A stretch of DNA of 64,000 bases from Perkinsus chesapeaki ATCC PRA-425 (Eukaryota; Protista; Perkinsozoa). The notes below the pieces were generated by a model that was not told the origin of the DNA, ran no database searches, and saw only the letters and a list, made by a program, of their open reading frames with translations. Each line of letters starts with the position of its first letter. Position 1 is the first letter of the stretch. The stretch spans positions 124,001 through 188,000 of the forward strand of contig JAAPAO010000003.1 of assembly GCA_013115145.1 (NCBI GenBank). The letters are read 5' to 3'. The position numbers and the translations under genes were made by a program. Below, piece by piece: positions 57,391-64,000 of this stretch.

Positions 57391-57527
57391 GGGTCTGGAC
57401 TACCGAGCCCACCTGCACCATCGTTACCTTGTTTGTTCTTTCCTCTGGAACTGATTTTTCTCATCACATTGAGCTGCGTTATGGCGTTCCTGGCTACCCC
57501 ACGCGAACGCAGTCTGGAGTTGTACCT

Positions 57528-59713
57528 ATGTCATCGTCACCAGTGGTGCGCAGGCCGTTCGAGGAGGACAAGAAGTTCATCAGCAAAATGGAGTCACCGA
57601 GGTGGCACATCGACAAGGGGTTCGTAGAGAACATGAACGTGCCCGTGAAATTTTATGCCAACGATAAAATCATGCCGGCAGTCATGGACGAGCTACAGTA
57701 ATGGGAAAGCGATCCCCCCGCTGAATCGAGCGCGACAATCTTAGGCGTTACTCGGTTCGCCCGGCTGGCGAGGCCGGCTTCCTGCCCGCACTGAAGCAGC
57801 TAGGAAACGTCGCCTCCCTACCAGGTAGGCCTGAGCTGTCCTCCACCGTCCTTCACTGAGCTCGCTTCAGGAATAGTCGGCAACGCTATCGGTCTGCCGG
57901 ACATTCATAGTGGCTACGGCTTTGCAGTGGGATCAGTCGCGGCGTGTAAGTTTCTGCGGCGCGGAGCGGCTGTTTGCGGGCGAATCTTGCCTCAGTCGAT
58001 GCTTCTGATCCGCGCGCGGTGGTCTCCCCAGGCGGAGTAGGATTCGATATCAACTGCGGGGTGAGGCTTCTAAGGTAGCATCATCATTACGCTTGCACGG
58101 CGAGGGTCTACTTCGGTGGGCATCAGGACGAATCTTACATTGGAGGATGTGGAGCCTGTGAAGGAACAGCTTGTCCAAGCGCTGTATGATTGCATACCTG
58201 TTGGTGTGGGCTCTGAAGGCGTTGTCCCGGTTAACCAGGATACACTTCGCGAAGCATTGGTGAGCTTACAGTTGGTACCCTCGAATTCACGGAAACATTT
58301 CAGCAATACGGTATGGACTGGTCTGTCCGGGAGGGCTACAGCTGGGTGGAGGATAAGTACCATTGTGAAGAGCAAGGCCGGTTGCTGAACGCCGATGCTT
58401 CTGAGGTGGGACAGTCTGCCTTGTGTGCCCAGGTAAGCGTTTTCTCAGGTTTCAAGACGTGCCATGATCCGGGGAGTACCGCAGCTGGGAACTCTAGGAG
58501 CCGGCAATCACTATGCTGAAGTCCAGGTAGACACTCCCTGCAGATGCCGACCTACTTCGGATTCTACTGAACAGGTCGTCGATGAAATATATGACAAGTA
58601 CGCCGCCAAGCAGCTCGGGTTGGATCACCCCGGCCAGGTCAGTCTACCAGTGTATTCCCCTTCCCGACTACCCCACATAGGTATGTCTAATGATGCACAG
58701 TGGCAGTCGAGGTCTAGGCCACCAGGTGGCAACAGACGCTCTGCAGCTGATGTGCAAGGCGGCTATGACTCGGAAGGTAGGACAGCCGTCCGGCTTATCG
58801 TCGATGCTACTTCGGTCCGCCTCAGAATCCTATTCATCTGAATGATCCCCAACTTTCCTGCGCGCCCATTAATTCTGACGAGGGCCAGCTGTATTTGAGG
58901 GCCATGGCAGCAGCTGCTAACTTCGCCTGGGTCAATCGCAGTACCATCACCTTCATGGCCAGACAGGCGTTCAGCAAGGTGCCGCCGCCCCCCTCTCCGG
59001 AACCTATTGCTGTTTTGCAGGTATTCCACCAAGATGCCGATGATCTTGACATGCATGTTGTTTACGACATTTCCCATAATACCGCCAAACTCGAAGAGCA
59101 CGTAAGAGGCATTGTGTGGCTATGCGTTCACCGTGGTGCAGTTGGTGAACGGCGAAGTTAAACAGCTGCTAGTCCATCGTAAAGGAGCAACGCGAGCTTT
59201 CCCGCCGAATCATCCCCTTGTTGCAAGCGACTACCAGGTAAGTGAGGGATACCCCTGTTGGCTACTGTACCGCCTTTGACAGAGCATCGGAGAGCCTGTA
59301 CTGATCGGAGGCTCAATGGGAACTTGCTCCTATGTTCTAGTAGGCACCCACACAGGCGAGGTAAGTGCTGCAAACGTTTGAAGAAACATCAACGCCGTTC
59401 CTCAGAAAGAGACTTTCTCGAGTACATGTCACGGTGCTGGAAGAGTCCTCAGTCGCAGTGGCAGCCGTCGTAAGCTAGACTACGACCATGTCACATCGGA
59501 GCTGGCGGACAGGGTAGGTCAGCCTCTACCGTGTCGGGTGGGACTGTGCTTTTGATTCAGGGCGTAAGCATGCGCGTAGCCTCCCCGAAGCTCATAGTGG
59601 AGGAGGCCCCGGAGTCTTACAAAGACGTCACCGCTGTGGTGAACACCTGCCATCAAGCTGGCATCTCGCGGAAGGTCGTCAAGATGCGCCCTATCGCTGT
59701 GGTTAAGGGCTGA
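57528..59713 (+). CDS. RTCB: RNA-splicing ligase RtcB, eukaryotic/archaeal (HSPC117) type
   Basis: [77 protein letters not shown]. Confidence 0.97.
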
Positions 59714-60001: not shown

Positions 60002-61173
60002 ATGTCCTCCACGACAGGCCAGGGAGGCTTTCCTCTCTTGCTCACCGCGGGTGGCAAGTCCCTCGAACCAGTGTCGCAAGCGGCACTGTCGAAAGCAGCT
60101 CGCATGCTGGGCCAAGATGCTGTGGCGGTACCACCTGTGAAAGCTGCCAATGTGAGCTTCCCTTCCGCAACTGTATCTTATAGCGACACTTTCCTTCTCA
60201 GAAAAGGCCGACGAGGGAGAGTCTTCTCACCTTCGAAGCGCCTCTGCTCCGGCCACACGCTCCTCTGGAAGCCACTGGGGTGGCCCTGAAAAGTGACGAG
60301 ACTGAAGATACTACCTTGGGTATGATCGACCACCAGCACATAGAGATGCTTCCGAGGCCACTTTGTAAAAAGCGAAAAGCAGACTTCTTTGAGCAGCTCC
60401 AGCATGAAGAAGCCACGAAGGGCTCATCTTGCGGCGTAGATCCAGACGAGGTCACTGCCAGCGACCTGGATGCGCTAGAGGCCAGCCTTCCCTTTGGTCC
60501 CGACCAACTGCAAGAGTTCATAATCACGCGGAGGTTCCCTCTGTTGTACGTTGGTGTTGACAGCGCTGGTCTCAACGCGCCTGGGGTGTGCAGTACAGCA
60601 GCTGAGGATCTTATTGCCAACGATGGCATCGTATCGGTGAGGGTGCAGGCGAGAGCCGTAGTTGAGACGAGGGACACCGCGGGAGCACAGGCGAGGGGAG
60701 GACTCTTAGTGGTCGATCAGGACCAGCTCCCGGGATCGAGAAGGGAGTTCGGATTGCCCACAGGGCCTGAGCTGTGCTGGCGGGCCCTTGCGCCCGGCCA
60801 AAGGTTTCATCGCAGCGGTGATGCCGAGGCGCCAGTGGTCCTACCGGGAGGATGGAAATTTCCGAGTAGGCTGTTGAAGGTCGACCGAGAGTGGGTGGAC
60901 ATGCGGGGTAGGGTGGCCTCCTGTGTGCTCGGTGATGGCTTGTGGATCGGCTTCGAGAAGGGCGACAGCGTTCTTGTCTCGGGAGAGAAGGGCCAACTCA
61001 GCCGTCTACTGGAAAGGGTACAGTCCGGAGCAGTCGTGGAGGTGCGGAACTGCTGGGCTTTGCCGGATTGGCTTGTTACCAGTGGCTCACGTGAACTGAG
61101 AGGAGACAGCACCAGCGTGGAGATCCTCCGCATTACTGAGAAGTCTGCCATGTCCCCGAAGTGCCTCGCATGA
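60002..61173 (+). CDS. miniature BRCA2-like protein (one BRC repeat, degenerate helical/OB segment)
   Basis: LLTAGGKSLEPVSQAALSKAARMLG fits the BRC repeat (F.TASGK.V.VS..SL.KA..L). GPELCWRAL...SRLLKVDREWV parallels BRCA2 GKEEFYRAL...PKLISRIWV. VLGDG...LSRLLERVQSGAVVEV is OB1-like. One intron 60152-60201. Alternative start 59963. Confidence 0.55.
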
Positions 61174-61396
61174 CATTAGTGTCATTACCCCTCGGCAAGT
61201 GTTATCTTTTGTTCTAGTTCTAGCTCTACAACTGGGGTCTTTGCCTGTCCCGTCGTGGTGTGCGAAATACTGTAGGTATCTGTTGGACATTCTAGCGCGC
61301 CGTGAGCGACGCTCCTAGAAAGGGACCTCAACCTCCCTTCGGTCGTCCTTATGAGCCCCGTACGATGCTGCTCTGACAGCAGCCTTATGTGGTAGA

Positions 61397-63442
61397 ATGC
61401 TAGTGCGGCATCGCCTTCCCCTTGGCGCAGCGCGCACAACACGGTTTCCAGAGATCATTAGACCATCTGGAGGAACGCCCATCCATCTATACACCGACGA
61501 TGTGGACCAGCACACTATGCAGCAGCTGTGAGGGGCGGGGTCGCGCTATTGGCAATCTACAGCCAAGGCTCAGTGACGGACTTGTGTGGTCAGGGTCAAC
61601 CTTGCTCGGTCGCCGATGGTCGTGGGCTACGTTGCGGCCATGGCTGATGTTCACCTAGGCAAAGTTATGCAGCCGGATGGAGAACGCTCACTGTTCCATA
61701 GTTTTTTCGCAGGTGCTACGATCGGCAGTGTTTTTGCATCGCGGGATTTCGTTTGCCCCAATGCGGTGGGCGTGGACATAGGCTGTGGCATGTGCGCAGT
61801 GAAGGTAGGTCACCTCGTTTCTCGAGGTGTCTAACGTAGGGTCCGTACGGCGTGTCGCTGTCAGTGTAAAGATCCACACCATGCCAAGGGAGATGTTTCA
61901 TTGGAAAATATTCAACATTGAGGAGTGTATTTTCTGTGGTGGTTTGGGAAGGAAGGCCATCAGTCTGATAGCTCGATCGGATGATGGCACCAATTCCGAA
62001 CATTATCGCTTCGCGGCTCTTCGACCATAGTAGCCGTGGCGAGAGTGGCGGCCTTCGTAGAATTGCAGCAATAACGCTTCCGAAATAGGGTTTTGCAGTG
62101 GACGATCTATACGTAGGTTCCAGAGCTATCGAAACATGCTCTGTCGGAACGGTTCTTGACAAGGCTGCATCGTCAGTTGGTGGAGCGAATCCCGACGGGT
62201 ATATGCCAACTGAGAGACGGTTCATGGCATTGCCTACACGTTAGGCTTCAACAGCCACGAAAAAGCATCTTCTGAGATGCGAAAGGCGATGAAGCAATTG
62301 ATAGAGAAACACAACCCTACTGCGCACACTAGGCGGGTGAGCGAATAGCGTATACGATTCGAGCAGCTGACCTGTAGCCAGGTCATCGGCGATCGGCATG
62401 TGAGACAGATCGGCACTCTTGGAGGCGGCAATCATTTCATCGAGCTTCTCTACGATGAGGAGGACGGCATCTGGCTCATGCTGCATTCCGGGAGTCGAAA
62501 TATCGGCAACATTACTGCTCAGCATTACGATGAGTAAATGCGGCGACACAATTTGGTGTCCCCGACTATTAAGGGATATCTGTGAGTCGAGAGGGGTATT
62601 GGACGGTCTCAGGTTGGCAGCGAAGCAGAACGGAACGTCGAAGGAGAACCTTGCGCATCTTGCGATCGCCAGCGAGGCCGGGCAGGACTATTTGCGGGAC
62701 ATGCACTTCTGCCAGGCCTATGCGATGGAGAATCGGAGGTTCATGATGGATTCATTCGTCAGTAGCTACTATCTCCGCCGTCTTGCATCAGTCAGCGTAT
62801 TAGGCGCTGTTAGAGATCTCAGCGGGAGAGCGCCGGATTGGGACACACTCGTGAACATCCATCACAATTACTGTGAGTGTGAGGACTGTGTTTATCGGGA
62901 TCCAGAATCGGGCAAGATAATACGGGATAAGCTGTGGATCACCAGGAAAGGAGCAACTTCGGTACAAACTGGTTCACGCTGTCAAATGATCAGTCTGATT
63001 CTAGGCTCGTAAAGGCCAGCTTGGCATAATACCGGGCAGCATGGGAACCGGGAGCTACATCACTCGAGGGAAGGGCGAGAGCATGGCTTGGAGTTCATGT
63101 TCGTTTCTTCCGCCTTATCGATTCGAGCGTAATCGGTCTCGAACTGTCAACCGTGGCTTTTAGGCTCTCATGGTGCTGGCCGACGGCTGAGCCGGAACGC
63201 CGCTAAGCGGGTGGTCGGAGTTGCCGAATTGAATGAAATGATGGAAGGTATCGTTTGGGACAGCGATGCCGCTAAGTTGGTAGGATCGACTTGCCGGTAT
63301 GAGGATATTCTTATCATCGCTGCAGGTCCGTGATGAAGCACCCGTCGCCTACAAAGATCTCAAAGAAGTGATGGTGAACCAGGAGGACCTGGTCGAGGTC
63401 GTGCATAAGTTACTGCCGTTGATGAACATGAAGGGATATTAG
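61397..63442 (+). CDS. rtcB: RtcB RNA ligase, bacterial (E. coli RtcB-like) type, with N-terminal extension
   Basis: MADVHLG, GATIGSV, PNAVGVDIGCGM, IGTLGGGNHFIE, IWLMLHSGSRNIG, NIHHNY, WITRKGAT, GIIPGSMG, SHGAGRRLSR, DEAPVAYK; multi-exon. Confidence 0.93.
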
Positions 63443-63586: not shown

Positions 63587-64000
63587 ATGAAGAGTGTTTT
63601 CCTCCGAGCGAGCGAGATCTCAGAGGCGGCATGTGGCCTGAGGCGTTTCCTCAATAACGATGTGAATCGACGGCACTTCCTGTCAGAAGGGGTGTCATTC
63701 AAAAAGTACCCTTGGGATTTCAAGGTTGACGAAATCCCAGACGATTCCGCCAGTGCGGCATCCGAGCACTTCATCAATTTCACTTTATGGAAGAAAGATT
63801 TGACAACTCGCGAAGCGCTCGTGGACATTTCCAAGAAGACAGGTATCAGCATGAAGGCTTGGTCCGTTGCTGGATGGAAAGATAGGAAAGCAATAACAAC
63901 TCAGAGGGTATCTATCCAAGCCGATCTGAAAGAGAAGCTTATGCAGTATCTGAGCAACGATTCAGTACGATTGTCCGACTTCACTCCTGGGAACCAGCTC
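63587..64000 (+). CDS. tRNA pseudouridine synthase TruD/Pus7 family (runs off window end)
   Basis: KKYPWDFKVDEI, FTLWKKDLTTREAL, AGWKDRKAITTQRVS (GxKDxxAxTxQ catalytic motif). Confidence 0.9.
   Translation, partial: MKSVFLRASEISEAACGLRRFLNNDVNRRHFLSEGVSFKKYPWDFKVDEIPDDSASAASEHFINFTLWKKDLTTREALVDISKKTGISMKAWSVAGWKDRKAITTQRVSIQADLKEKLMQYLSNDSVRLSDFTPGNQL

Follow-up and report, generated by a model that had tools for sequence, protein, structure and literature searches.

A bacterial-type RtcB gene in Perkinsus chesapeaki

The window analyzed here is a stretch of 64,000 nucleotides from Perkinsus chesapeaki ATCC PRA-425 (positions 124,001 to 188,000 of contig JAAPAO010000003.1, GenBank assembly GCA_013115145.1). 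Its forward strand carries, at positions 61397–63442, a gene for an RtcB RNA ligase of bacterial type whose N-terminus is extended by a short basic leader. When E. coli RtcB is used to guide the reading of the splice junctions, the gene resolves into 11 exons separated by ten introns and encodes a protein of 417 amino acids. Exon 1 (61397–61527, codons 1–43 plus 2 nt) ends at a canonical GT donor at 61528; the frame from the ATG at 61397 opens MLVRHRLPLGAARTTRFPEIIRPSGGTPIHLYTDD, the first 54 nucleotides (61397–61450) translate exactly as MLVRHRLPLGAARTTRFP, and codons 1–16 (61397–61444, MLVRHRLPLGAARTTR), delimited by translation and by alignment to bacterial proteins, constitute a candidate matrix-targeting presequence. 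Exon 2 (61594–61664) encodes VNLARSPMVVGYVAAMADVHLGK plus a single G and is followed by a 48-nt intron 2 (61665–61712), to which we return below. Exon 3 (61713–61804) runs from GATIGSV to GVDIGCGMCAVK and contains Asp89 and Cys92. Intron 3 closes with a canonical acceptor (tAG/GTT, the slash marking the junction; AG at 62115–62116), adding Val-Pro at the start of exon 4 (62117–62198, VPELSKHAL...) as in both the GenBank model (P0086) and the protein of P. olseni. Exon 5 (62245–62336) precedes exon 6 (62382–62533, GTLGGGNHFIE...MLHSGSR), which holds Asn173, His174, His191 and Arg195 and matches the Pfam RtcB family at E=3.9e-14. Exon 7 (62613–62761) is followed by exon 8 (62804–62961), with His277 in the motif NIHHNY, exon 9 (63005–63098), with GIIPGSMG, and exon 10 (63164–63279), with SCSHGAGR, Arg347 and His343, by alignment the histidine to which guanosine monophosphate (GMP) is attached. 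Exon 11 (63326–63442) ends in a TAG stop codon at 63440–63442.

This model corrects the public one. The GenBank protein FOL47_005399 is identical to the 417-residue model from residue 52 on, except for a stretch of 16 amino acids where intron 2 is retained as coding sequence; it begins at Met52, 51 residues too late, and therefore lacks exon 1 and the extension. In a run search, neither of the two tiny sequencing runs deposited under the species label covers the locus.

Exon pieces 2–11 all match Pfam RtcB (PF01139), together spanning profile positions 25–426 of 426, and the same family is precomputed for the GenBank model and its orthologs. Identity to bacterial RtcBs is 38–44% over ~400 amino acids across 80 loci, and 41% (156/380) to E. 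coli RtcB. All nine of the catalytic and metal positions compared are kept (D89, C92, N173, H174, H191, R195, H277, H343 and R347); their E. coli counterparts are D75, C78, N167, H168, H185, R189, H281, H337 and R341, the metal-binding and catalytic residues, with H337 as the GMP-accepting histidine. The exon-6 piece matches human-type RTCB structures weakly (E about 4e-3), and a search of the PDB with the exon 2–3 piece returned no match. An earlier, sequence-only reading of this stretch had called the gene bacterial-type, a classification borne out by these comparisons and by the distinct eukaryote-type RtcB that lies next to it. The locus, then, encodes a bacterial-lineage RtcB that, judged by its intact residues, is catalytically competent.

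Over the mature part of the protein, the proportion of nonsynonymous differences from P. olseni (pN) is 0.14 and that of synonymous differences (pS) is 0.80; only these two values are given, since at this pS synonymous sites have reached saturation and the tblastn alignments extend across introns. Outside intron 2, purifying selection appears to act on the gene. Contamination and recent transfer are ruled out by the ten introns together with the lack of any bacterial match above 45%.

The start codon and the N-terminal extension

When the protein is aligned with MAFFT to E. coli RtcB and 18 bacterial RtcBs drawn from the 80 fetched loci, the bacterial initiator methionine falls opposite Phe17/Pro18, an extension of 16–17 residues. 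The Perkinsus protein therefore has 16 additional N-terminal residues, the length also obtained with the anchor that was used across 106 homologs. BLASTP of exon 1 against the N-terminus of E. coli RtcB gave no match. Residues 1–18 include four Arg, one His and no Asp or Glu, and the earlier description of an Arg-rich, acid-free N-terminus lying upstream of where bacterial RtcBs begin is thus accurate. At the amino-acid frequencies of the mature domain, the chance of finding no Asp or Glu in 17 residues is ~0.11 and that of at least four Arg ~0.03; taken alone, the composition of the extension is unusual but not overwhelming.

That reading had allowed that a true start downstream of the extension would undo its proposal, and several observations exclude such a start. 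An in-frame TGA lies 15 codons 5' of the ATG at 61397, and the next in-frame ATG encodes Met41, within the conserved TMQQL helix of the fold. Three P. olseni assemblies have the ATG at the homologous place (ATGCTGGTA compared with ATGCTAGTG), while the DNA upstream of it is unalignable. In the AlphaFold model of the P. olseni ortholog (mean predicted local distance difference test, pLDDT, of 84) the confident fold begins at residue 18, with strands at 18–20 and 28–30 and a helix at 37–48, and residues 1–10 have a mean pLDDT of 51; the first 36 residues of the truncated, insert-bearing GenBank protein are below a pLDDT of 50 in its own structure model. On the strength of these comparisons we conclude that the start at ATG 61397 is real and that a downstream start is ruled out.

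The P. olseni counterpart of the extension is 15 amino acids long (MLVCSRAILASAPPK, followed by FPRVIRPSGG), and it too is basic and free of Asp and Glu. Identity between the two species is 47% in the extension and 78% in the mature part, with pN of 0.36 and 0.14, respectively. The extension thus changes faster, yet its length and its basic composition without acidic residues persist, as expected of a targeting peptide.

One base 5' of the ATG lies an AG (61394–61395, forward strand) that is a candidate splice or spliced-leader acceptor. It is also found in P. olseni; the context is tggtAG/A ATG in P. chesapeaki and, after a T-rich tract, gtcAG/T ATG in P. olseni. The 46 nt before the start codon contain three out-of-frame ATGs (61351, 61365 and 61387). 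These would impede scanning unless the AG sets the 5' end of the transcript, in which case all three would be removed.

A lost splice donor in intron 2

The first base of intron 2 is T in P. chesapeaki, so that the donor is lost (G/TT instead of a GT), whereas the corresponding intron of P. olseni is canonical (G/GTGAG...CAG/GT). The 48 nt of the intron keep the reading frame and contain no stop codon; if retained, they would add 16 residues (VMQPDGERSLFHSFFA) within the motif HLGK/GATIGSV, a position at which no aligned homolog has an insert. If the GT one base upstream served as donor instead, 49 nt would be removed and the shifted frame would run into a stop after 22 codons. The window belongs to the GenBank assembly, with which it agrees at every base over 7,385 nt. 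Intron 2 could be retained, it could be spliced non-canonically, or the change could be a young inactivating mutation or an assembly error.

The third of these options would mean that the bacterial-type RtcB of P. chesapeaki is being inactivated, an explanation compatible with any localization of the protein. It draws on the donor loss, which forces either the 16-residue insert in a conserved motif or the frameshift, and on the poorly modeled N-terminus of the insert-bearing GenBank protein. On the other hand, the remaining exons are all open, the catalytic residues are intact, pN lies far under pS, and the intron has a length divisible by three and contains no stop; moreover, a single-base assembly error is possible since the window and the GenBank record are the same assembly. 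Weighing these points, we regard inactivation as improbable.

An old eukaryotic family of bacterial-type RtcBs

Relatives were gathered by an exhaustive search with a variable, stop-free piece of 116 amino acids, and then by a word search in which the P. olseni ortholog was the query. Identity is 74–85% within Perkinsus and 55–57% to dinoflagellates (Prorocentrum, Effrenium and Durusdinium); over the aligned part it is 53% to the chromerid Vitrella and 61% to Chromera, and green algae, diatoms and the ciliate Halteria follow at 43–50%. Members from Plasmodium and Hepatocystis and a copy from a rotifer surfaced in a separate search, the rotifer copy with a haemosporidian protein as query.

In a tree built without kinetoplastid, diplonemid or M. 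xanthus sequences, these proteins form a eukaryote-rich clade, and support for its split from E. coli and the remaining bacteria in the sample is 100/99. The Perkinsus copy groups as sister to those of dinoflagellates (ultrafast bootstrap 97, Shimodaira–Hasegawa-like approximate likelihood ratio test 91; FastTree 97), and the gene therefore tracks the organismal tree within Dinozoa. From this topology we conclude that it is vertically inherited within Myzozoa. The second RtcB of Perkinsus is no recent bacterial acquisition but part of an old eukaryotic family, nearly all members of which carry leaders of organelle type.

Spirochaete RtcBs (P0220, P0234, P0157 and P0168, from a Leptospira metagenome-assembled genome and Rectinemataceae) nest inside the eukaryote-rich clade. 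They start as bacterial RtcBs do, and some of them extend at the C-terminus by a tail of ~100 amino acids; their lineage may have donated the gene or received it by transfer. The clade otherwise consists of protists and algae, apart from the bdelloid rotifer Adineta steineri, whose member (P0229) has a presequence-like leader.

Of the 106 homologs whose N-termini are complete, 95 carry an extension longer than six residues in front of the conserved (L/F)P-x-I/V-I-x-T-x-G-V start, with a median length of 54. A hydrophobic core like that of a signal peptide is present in 10 of these 95 and absent from 85, and 63 of the 85 have a net charge of at least +2 over their first 20 residues. The dinoflagellate orthologs nearest to Perkinsus begin MRALGLRLARRG.., MRRFAWRLGARRG.. 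and MRCSSLLRQARRG.., and one Chromera copy (copy a) begins MWRLRSSFVGPHSLRCRF..; all are Arg-rich and without a signal peptide. The Perkinsus leader belongs to this Arg-rich, signal-peptide-free class, and comparably short Arg-rich leaders occur in P0137, P0151, P0172 and P0034. The last of these, from Pelagophyceae sp. CCMP2097, combines a presequence-like leader with degenerate catalytic motifs (MPCTEQGKG, GSGGHF and MPTGSGR) and is probably an inactive paralog.

Other members have leaders of plastid type. A second Chromera copy (copy b) carries a signal peptide and a 230-residue leader, several diatom copies have a signal peptide and then an AxA/F motif (signal-peptide-free diatom copies stand in the same clade), and in a second dinoflagellate group (P0130) a hydrophobic stretch is followed by a run of Arg. 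Most haemosporidian copies (P0203–P0213 and P0018) show a classical signal peptide and a basic stretch of ~70 amino acids, a bipartite leader of apicoplast type; the annotated P. vivax and Hepatocystis models are without a signal peptide. The plastid-type leaders of Plasmodium, Chromera copy b and the P0130 group occur in branches other than that of Perkinsus. No leader-type apicomplexan copy was found among the best 120 matches, and the only apicomplexan members found are haemosporidian (Plasmodium and Hepatocystis).

Localization of the Perkinsus protein

When the leader is considered in the context of this family, an organellar and most likely mitochondrial location is the best single reading of the comparative pattern, and we would put its chance of being right at about even. 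Mitochondrial targeting is plausible because leaders are nearly universal in the clade and Perkinsus is sister to dinoflagellate copies with Arg-rich, signal-peptide-free leaders. The leader itself shows several features of a presequence, namely an N-terminal extension, a net positive charge, no acidic residues and no signal-peptide core: its maximum hydropathy over 10 residues is 0.35, where copies with a signal peptide reach 2.0–3.5 (1.96 in the weakest). The sequence R16-F17/P18 matches the R-2 pattern of the mitochondrial processing peptidase at the domain boundary, although such patterns are common in Arg-rich sequence.

Several observations weigh against a mitochondrial presequence. The helical hydrophobic moment of the leader is no better than that of shuffled versions (fraction 0.38), Pro8 and Gly10 fall within it, and in the AlphaFold model the P. 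olseni leader is coil. At 16 residues it is far shorter than the family median, extensions of 20 residues or fewer being found in just 8 of the 95. The main text of a paper on the P. marinus mitochondrial complexome makes no mention of RtcB or of a ligase (PMC13623125). Finally, the lost intron-2 donor raises doubt over whether a normal protein is made in P. chesapeaki at all. The possible presequence of the sequence-only reading thus stands as a genuine, conserved, basic and acid-free extension in a leader-bearing clade, while its extreme shortness and its lack of a clear amphipathic helix leave the targeting function itself less certain.

The same weaknesses feed the main rival, in which the enzyme is cytosolic or nuclear, where it would back up cytosolic RNA repair alongside the canonical eukaryote-type RtcB of the gene 1.7 kb upstream, and the 16-residue tail is vestigial, the worn remnant of the longer organelle leader that relatives have, or simply neutral. 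Such a reading takes in the facts that the extension is among the shortest of its family, that no clear amphipathic helix is present and that 11 of the 106 homologs have no extension. It sits less well with the conservation between Perkinsus species of the start, the length and the acid-free, basic make-up despite saturated synonymous sites (pS ~0.8), or with a sister clade that is leader-bearing and several relatives whose Arg-rich leaders are similarly short. We consider it unlikely, if a serious competitor.

The bipartite leaders in members of the family from related lineages also bring into consideration the relict, genome-less plastid of Perkinsus, to which the protein might be sent in the manner of the plastid-type paralogs of Plasmodium, Chromera, diatoms and dinoflagellates. 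The hydropathy of the P. chesapeaki leader speaks against this. That of P. olseni is borderline at 1.90, just under the weakest signal-peptide copy. One annotated P. olseni protein (P0085) has a long N-terminus with a hydrophobic upstream exon of 55 amino acids (L082:6001-6209), which we rejected as a signal peptide and regard as an annotation artifact because two other P. olseni assemblies have a frameshift in this exon and P. chesapeaki lacks it. As Perkinsus furthermore clusters with the signal-peptide-free dinoflagellate copies, a plastid destination appears extremely unlikely.

A proposed role in organellar RNA repair

If the protein is mitochondrial, we envisage that the ~16-residue basic leader acts as a matrix presequence and is cut probably near Arg16-Phe17/Pro18. 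Within the organelle the enzyme would seal RNA breaks that have a 2',3'-cyclic phosphate or a 3'-phosphate on one side and a 5'-OH on the other, in a reaction that consumes GTP, needs Mn2+ and passes through a His343-GMP intermediate. Its role would be the general repair and end-healing of mitochondrial RNAs, such as imported tRNAs, pieces of rRNA and mRNAs, and it would not be a machine dedicated to trans-splicing or to rRNA joining. By analogy with bacterial RtcB, this general healing of RNA ends is the economical mechanism and, in our estimation, the better guess.

A more specialized role was suggested by the sequence-only reading, which linked the gene to the fragmented rRNAs of myzozoan mitochondria and to the trans-splicing of cox3 mRNA in dinoflagellates. 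A mitochondrial ligase specialized in Myzozoa for the joining of rRNA fragments or the trans-splicing of mRNAs has some appeal, since the orthologs that this reading proposed looking for in cox3-trans-splicing dinoflagellates are indeed present, with Arg-rich, signal-peptide-free leaders that resemble presequences, and since diplonemids have been proposed to join transcript modules by a mitochondrial RtcB (PMC12699882). However, the Perkinsus mitochondrial genome paper assigns cox3 trans-splicing and RNA editing to dinoflagellates alone, and Perkinsus has neither (PMC9550989). In T. gondii the mitoribosome is put together from over 50 short rRNAs (PMC11742926). The clade also reaches far beyond Myzozoa, to green algae, diatoms, a ciliate and a rotifer; and the haemosporidian copies, the only apicomplexan ones found, mostly carry signal peptides of apicoplast-type leaders. 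Taken together, these four points make the functional link weak, and we hold a dedicated joining role to be very unlikely.

Beyond Perkinsus, the pattern of leaders raises the possibility of a single old, eukaryote-wide family of bacterial-type RtcBs that is organellar throughout: mitochondrial in Perkinsus, dinoflagellates, chromerids, some diatoms and the rotifer, and directed to the plastid or apicoplast in Plasmodium, Chromera, diatoms and dinoflagellates. We advance this broader proposal tentatively, at somewhat less than an even chance. If true, it would imply a conserved and so far undescribed organellar pathway of 3'-phosphate RNA ligation and repair, of which the Perkinsus copy would be the mitochondrial form with a minimal leader and the Plasmodium copy a candidate apicoplast RtcB. 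Should the localization hold, dinozoan mitochondria and the plastids or apicoplasts of other lineages would possess a 3'-phosphate RNA ligase, and RNA repair or processing by ligation in organelles would become directly testable; Perkinsus is transfectable.

Genomic context

An archaeal/eukaryote-type RtcB gene lies at 57513–59713 on the forward strand, 1.7 kb upstream of the bacterial-type gene and in the same orientation. Its C-terminal exon matches Pfam RtcB (E=2.9e-12), and its N-terminus contains acidic residues. Four genes follow head to tail on this strand, namely the eukaryote-type RtcB, an open reading frame (ORF) without a Pfam match (60002–61173), the bacterial-type RtcB and a TruD pseudouridine synthase (63587–64000). 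The order RtcB, unknown ORF, RtcB is kept in P. olseni; TruD does not adjoin the group there. The upstream GenBank model of P. chesapeaki (L085:1-3098) joins an FAD/NAD-binding reductase and the eukaryote-type RtcB in one protein of 1226 amino acids and is probably a merged gene call.

Comparison with known RtcB systems

E. coli RtcB belongs to the same Pfam family as the Perkinsus protein (41% over 380 positions), is co-linear with it from residue 19 to the C-terminus and shares the catalytic residues that were checked. Unlike the E. coli gene, the Perkinsus gene is nuclear, has ten introns and a 16-residue extension, stands outside any RtcA/RtcR operon context and falls in the eukaryote-rich clade that is separated from E. 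coli at 100/99. The archaeal/eukaryotic RTCB (HSPC117), the tRNA-splicing ligase, belongs to the same superfamily and uses the same chemistry but lies in a different clade. The Plasmodium proteins annotated as 'tRNA-splicing ligase RtcB, putative' (P. vivax, P. ovale, P. malariae and others) are members of the same eukaryote-rich, bacterial-type clade as Perkinsus, although most of them have the bipartite apicoplast-type leader where Perkinsus has a short Arg-rich one.

In the literature searched, we found no paper linking RtcB to dinoflagellate mitochondria, to chloroplast transit peptides or, in any relevant way, to the apicoplast; RtcB and apicoplast were mentioned together only in an unrelated study of an Entamoeba DNA ligase. 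The family-wide pattern of organelle-type leaders thus appears to be undescribed in that literature.

A mitochondrial location has been predicted for the bacterial-clade RtcBs of diplonemids, Naegleria and kinetoplastids, and the Trypanosoma copy has been reported in the matrix (PMC12699882). This RTCB1 resembles the Perkinsus protein in being a bacterial-lineage RtcB in protists that have a separate tRNA-splicing ligase, and in bearing a predicted mitochondrial leader. The RTCB1 'clade 1' is described as holding E. coli RtcB1, M. xanthus RtcB1 and few eukaryotes (PMC12699882), whereas the Perkinsus protein belongs to a large algal, dinoflagellate and chromerid clade that excludes E. coli, in our kinetoplastid-free tree. 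Because of this description of clade 1, the Perkinsus family is probably separate from the RTCB1 of kinetoplastids and diplonemids. The mitochondrial RtcB of diplonemids and kinetoplastids is nonetheless the closest published parallel to the Perkinsus enzyme (PMC12699882).

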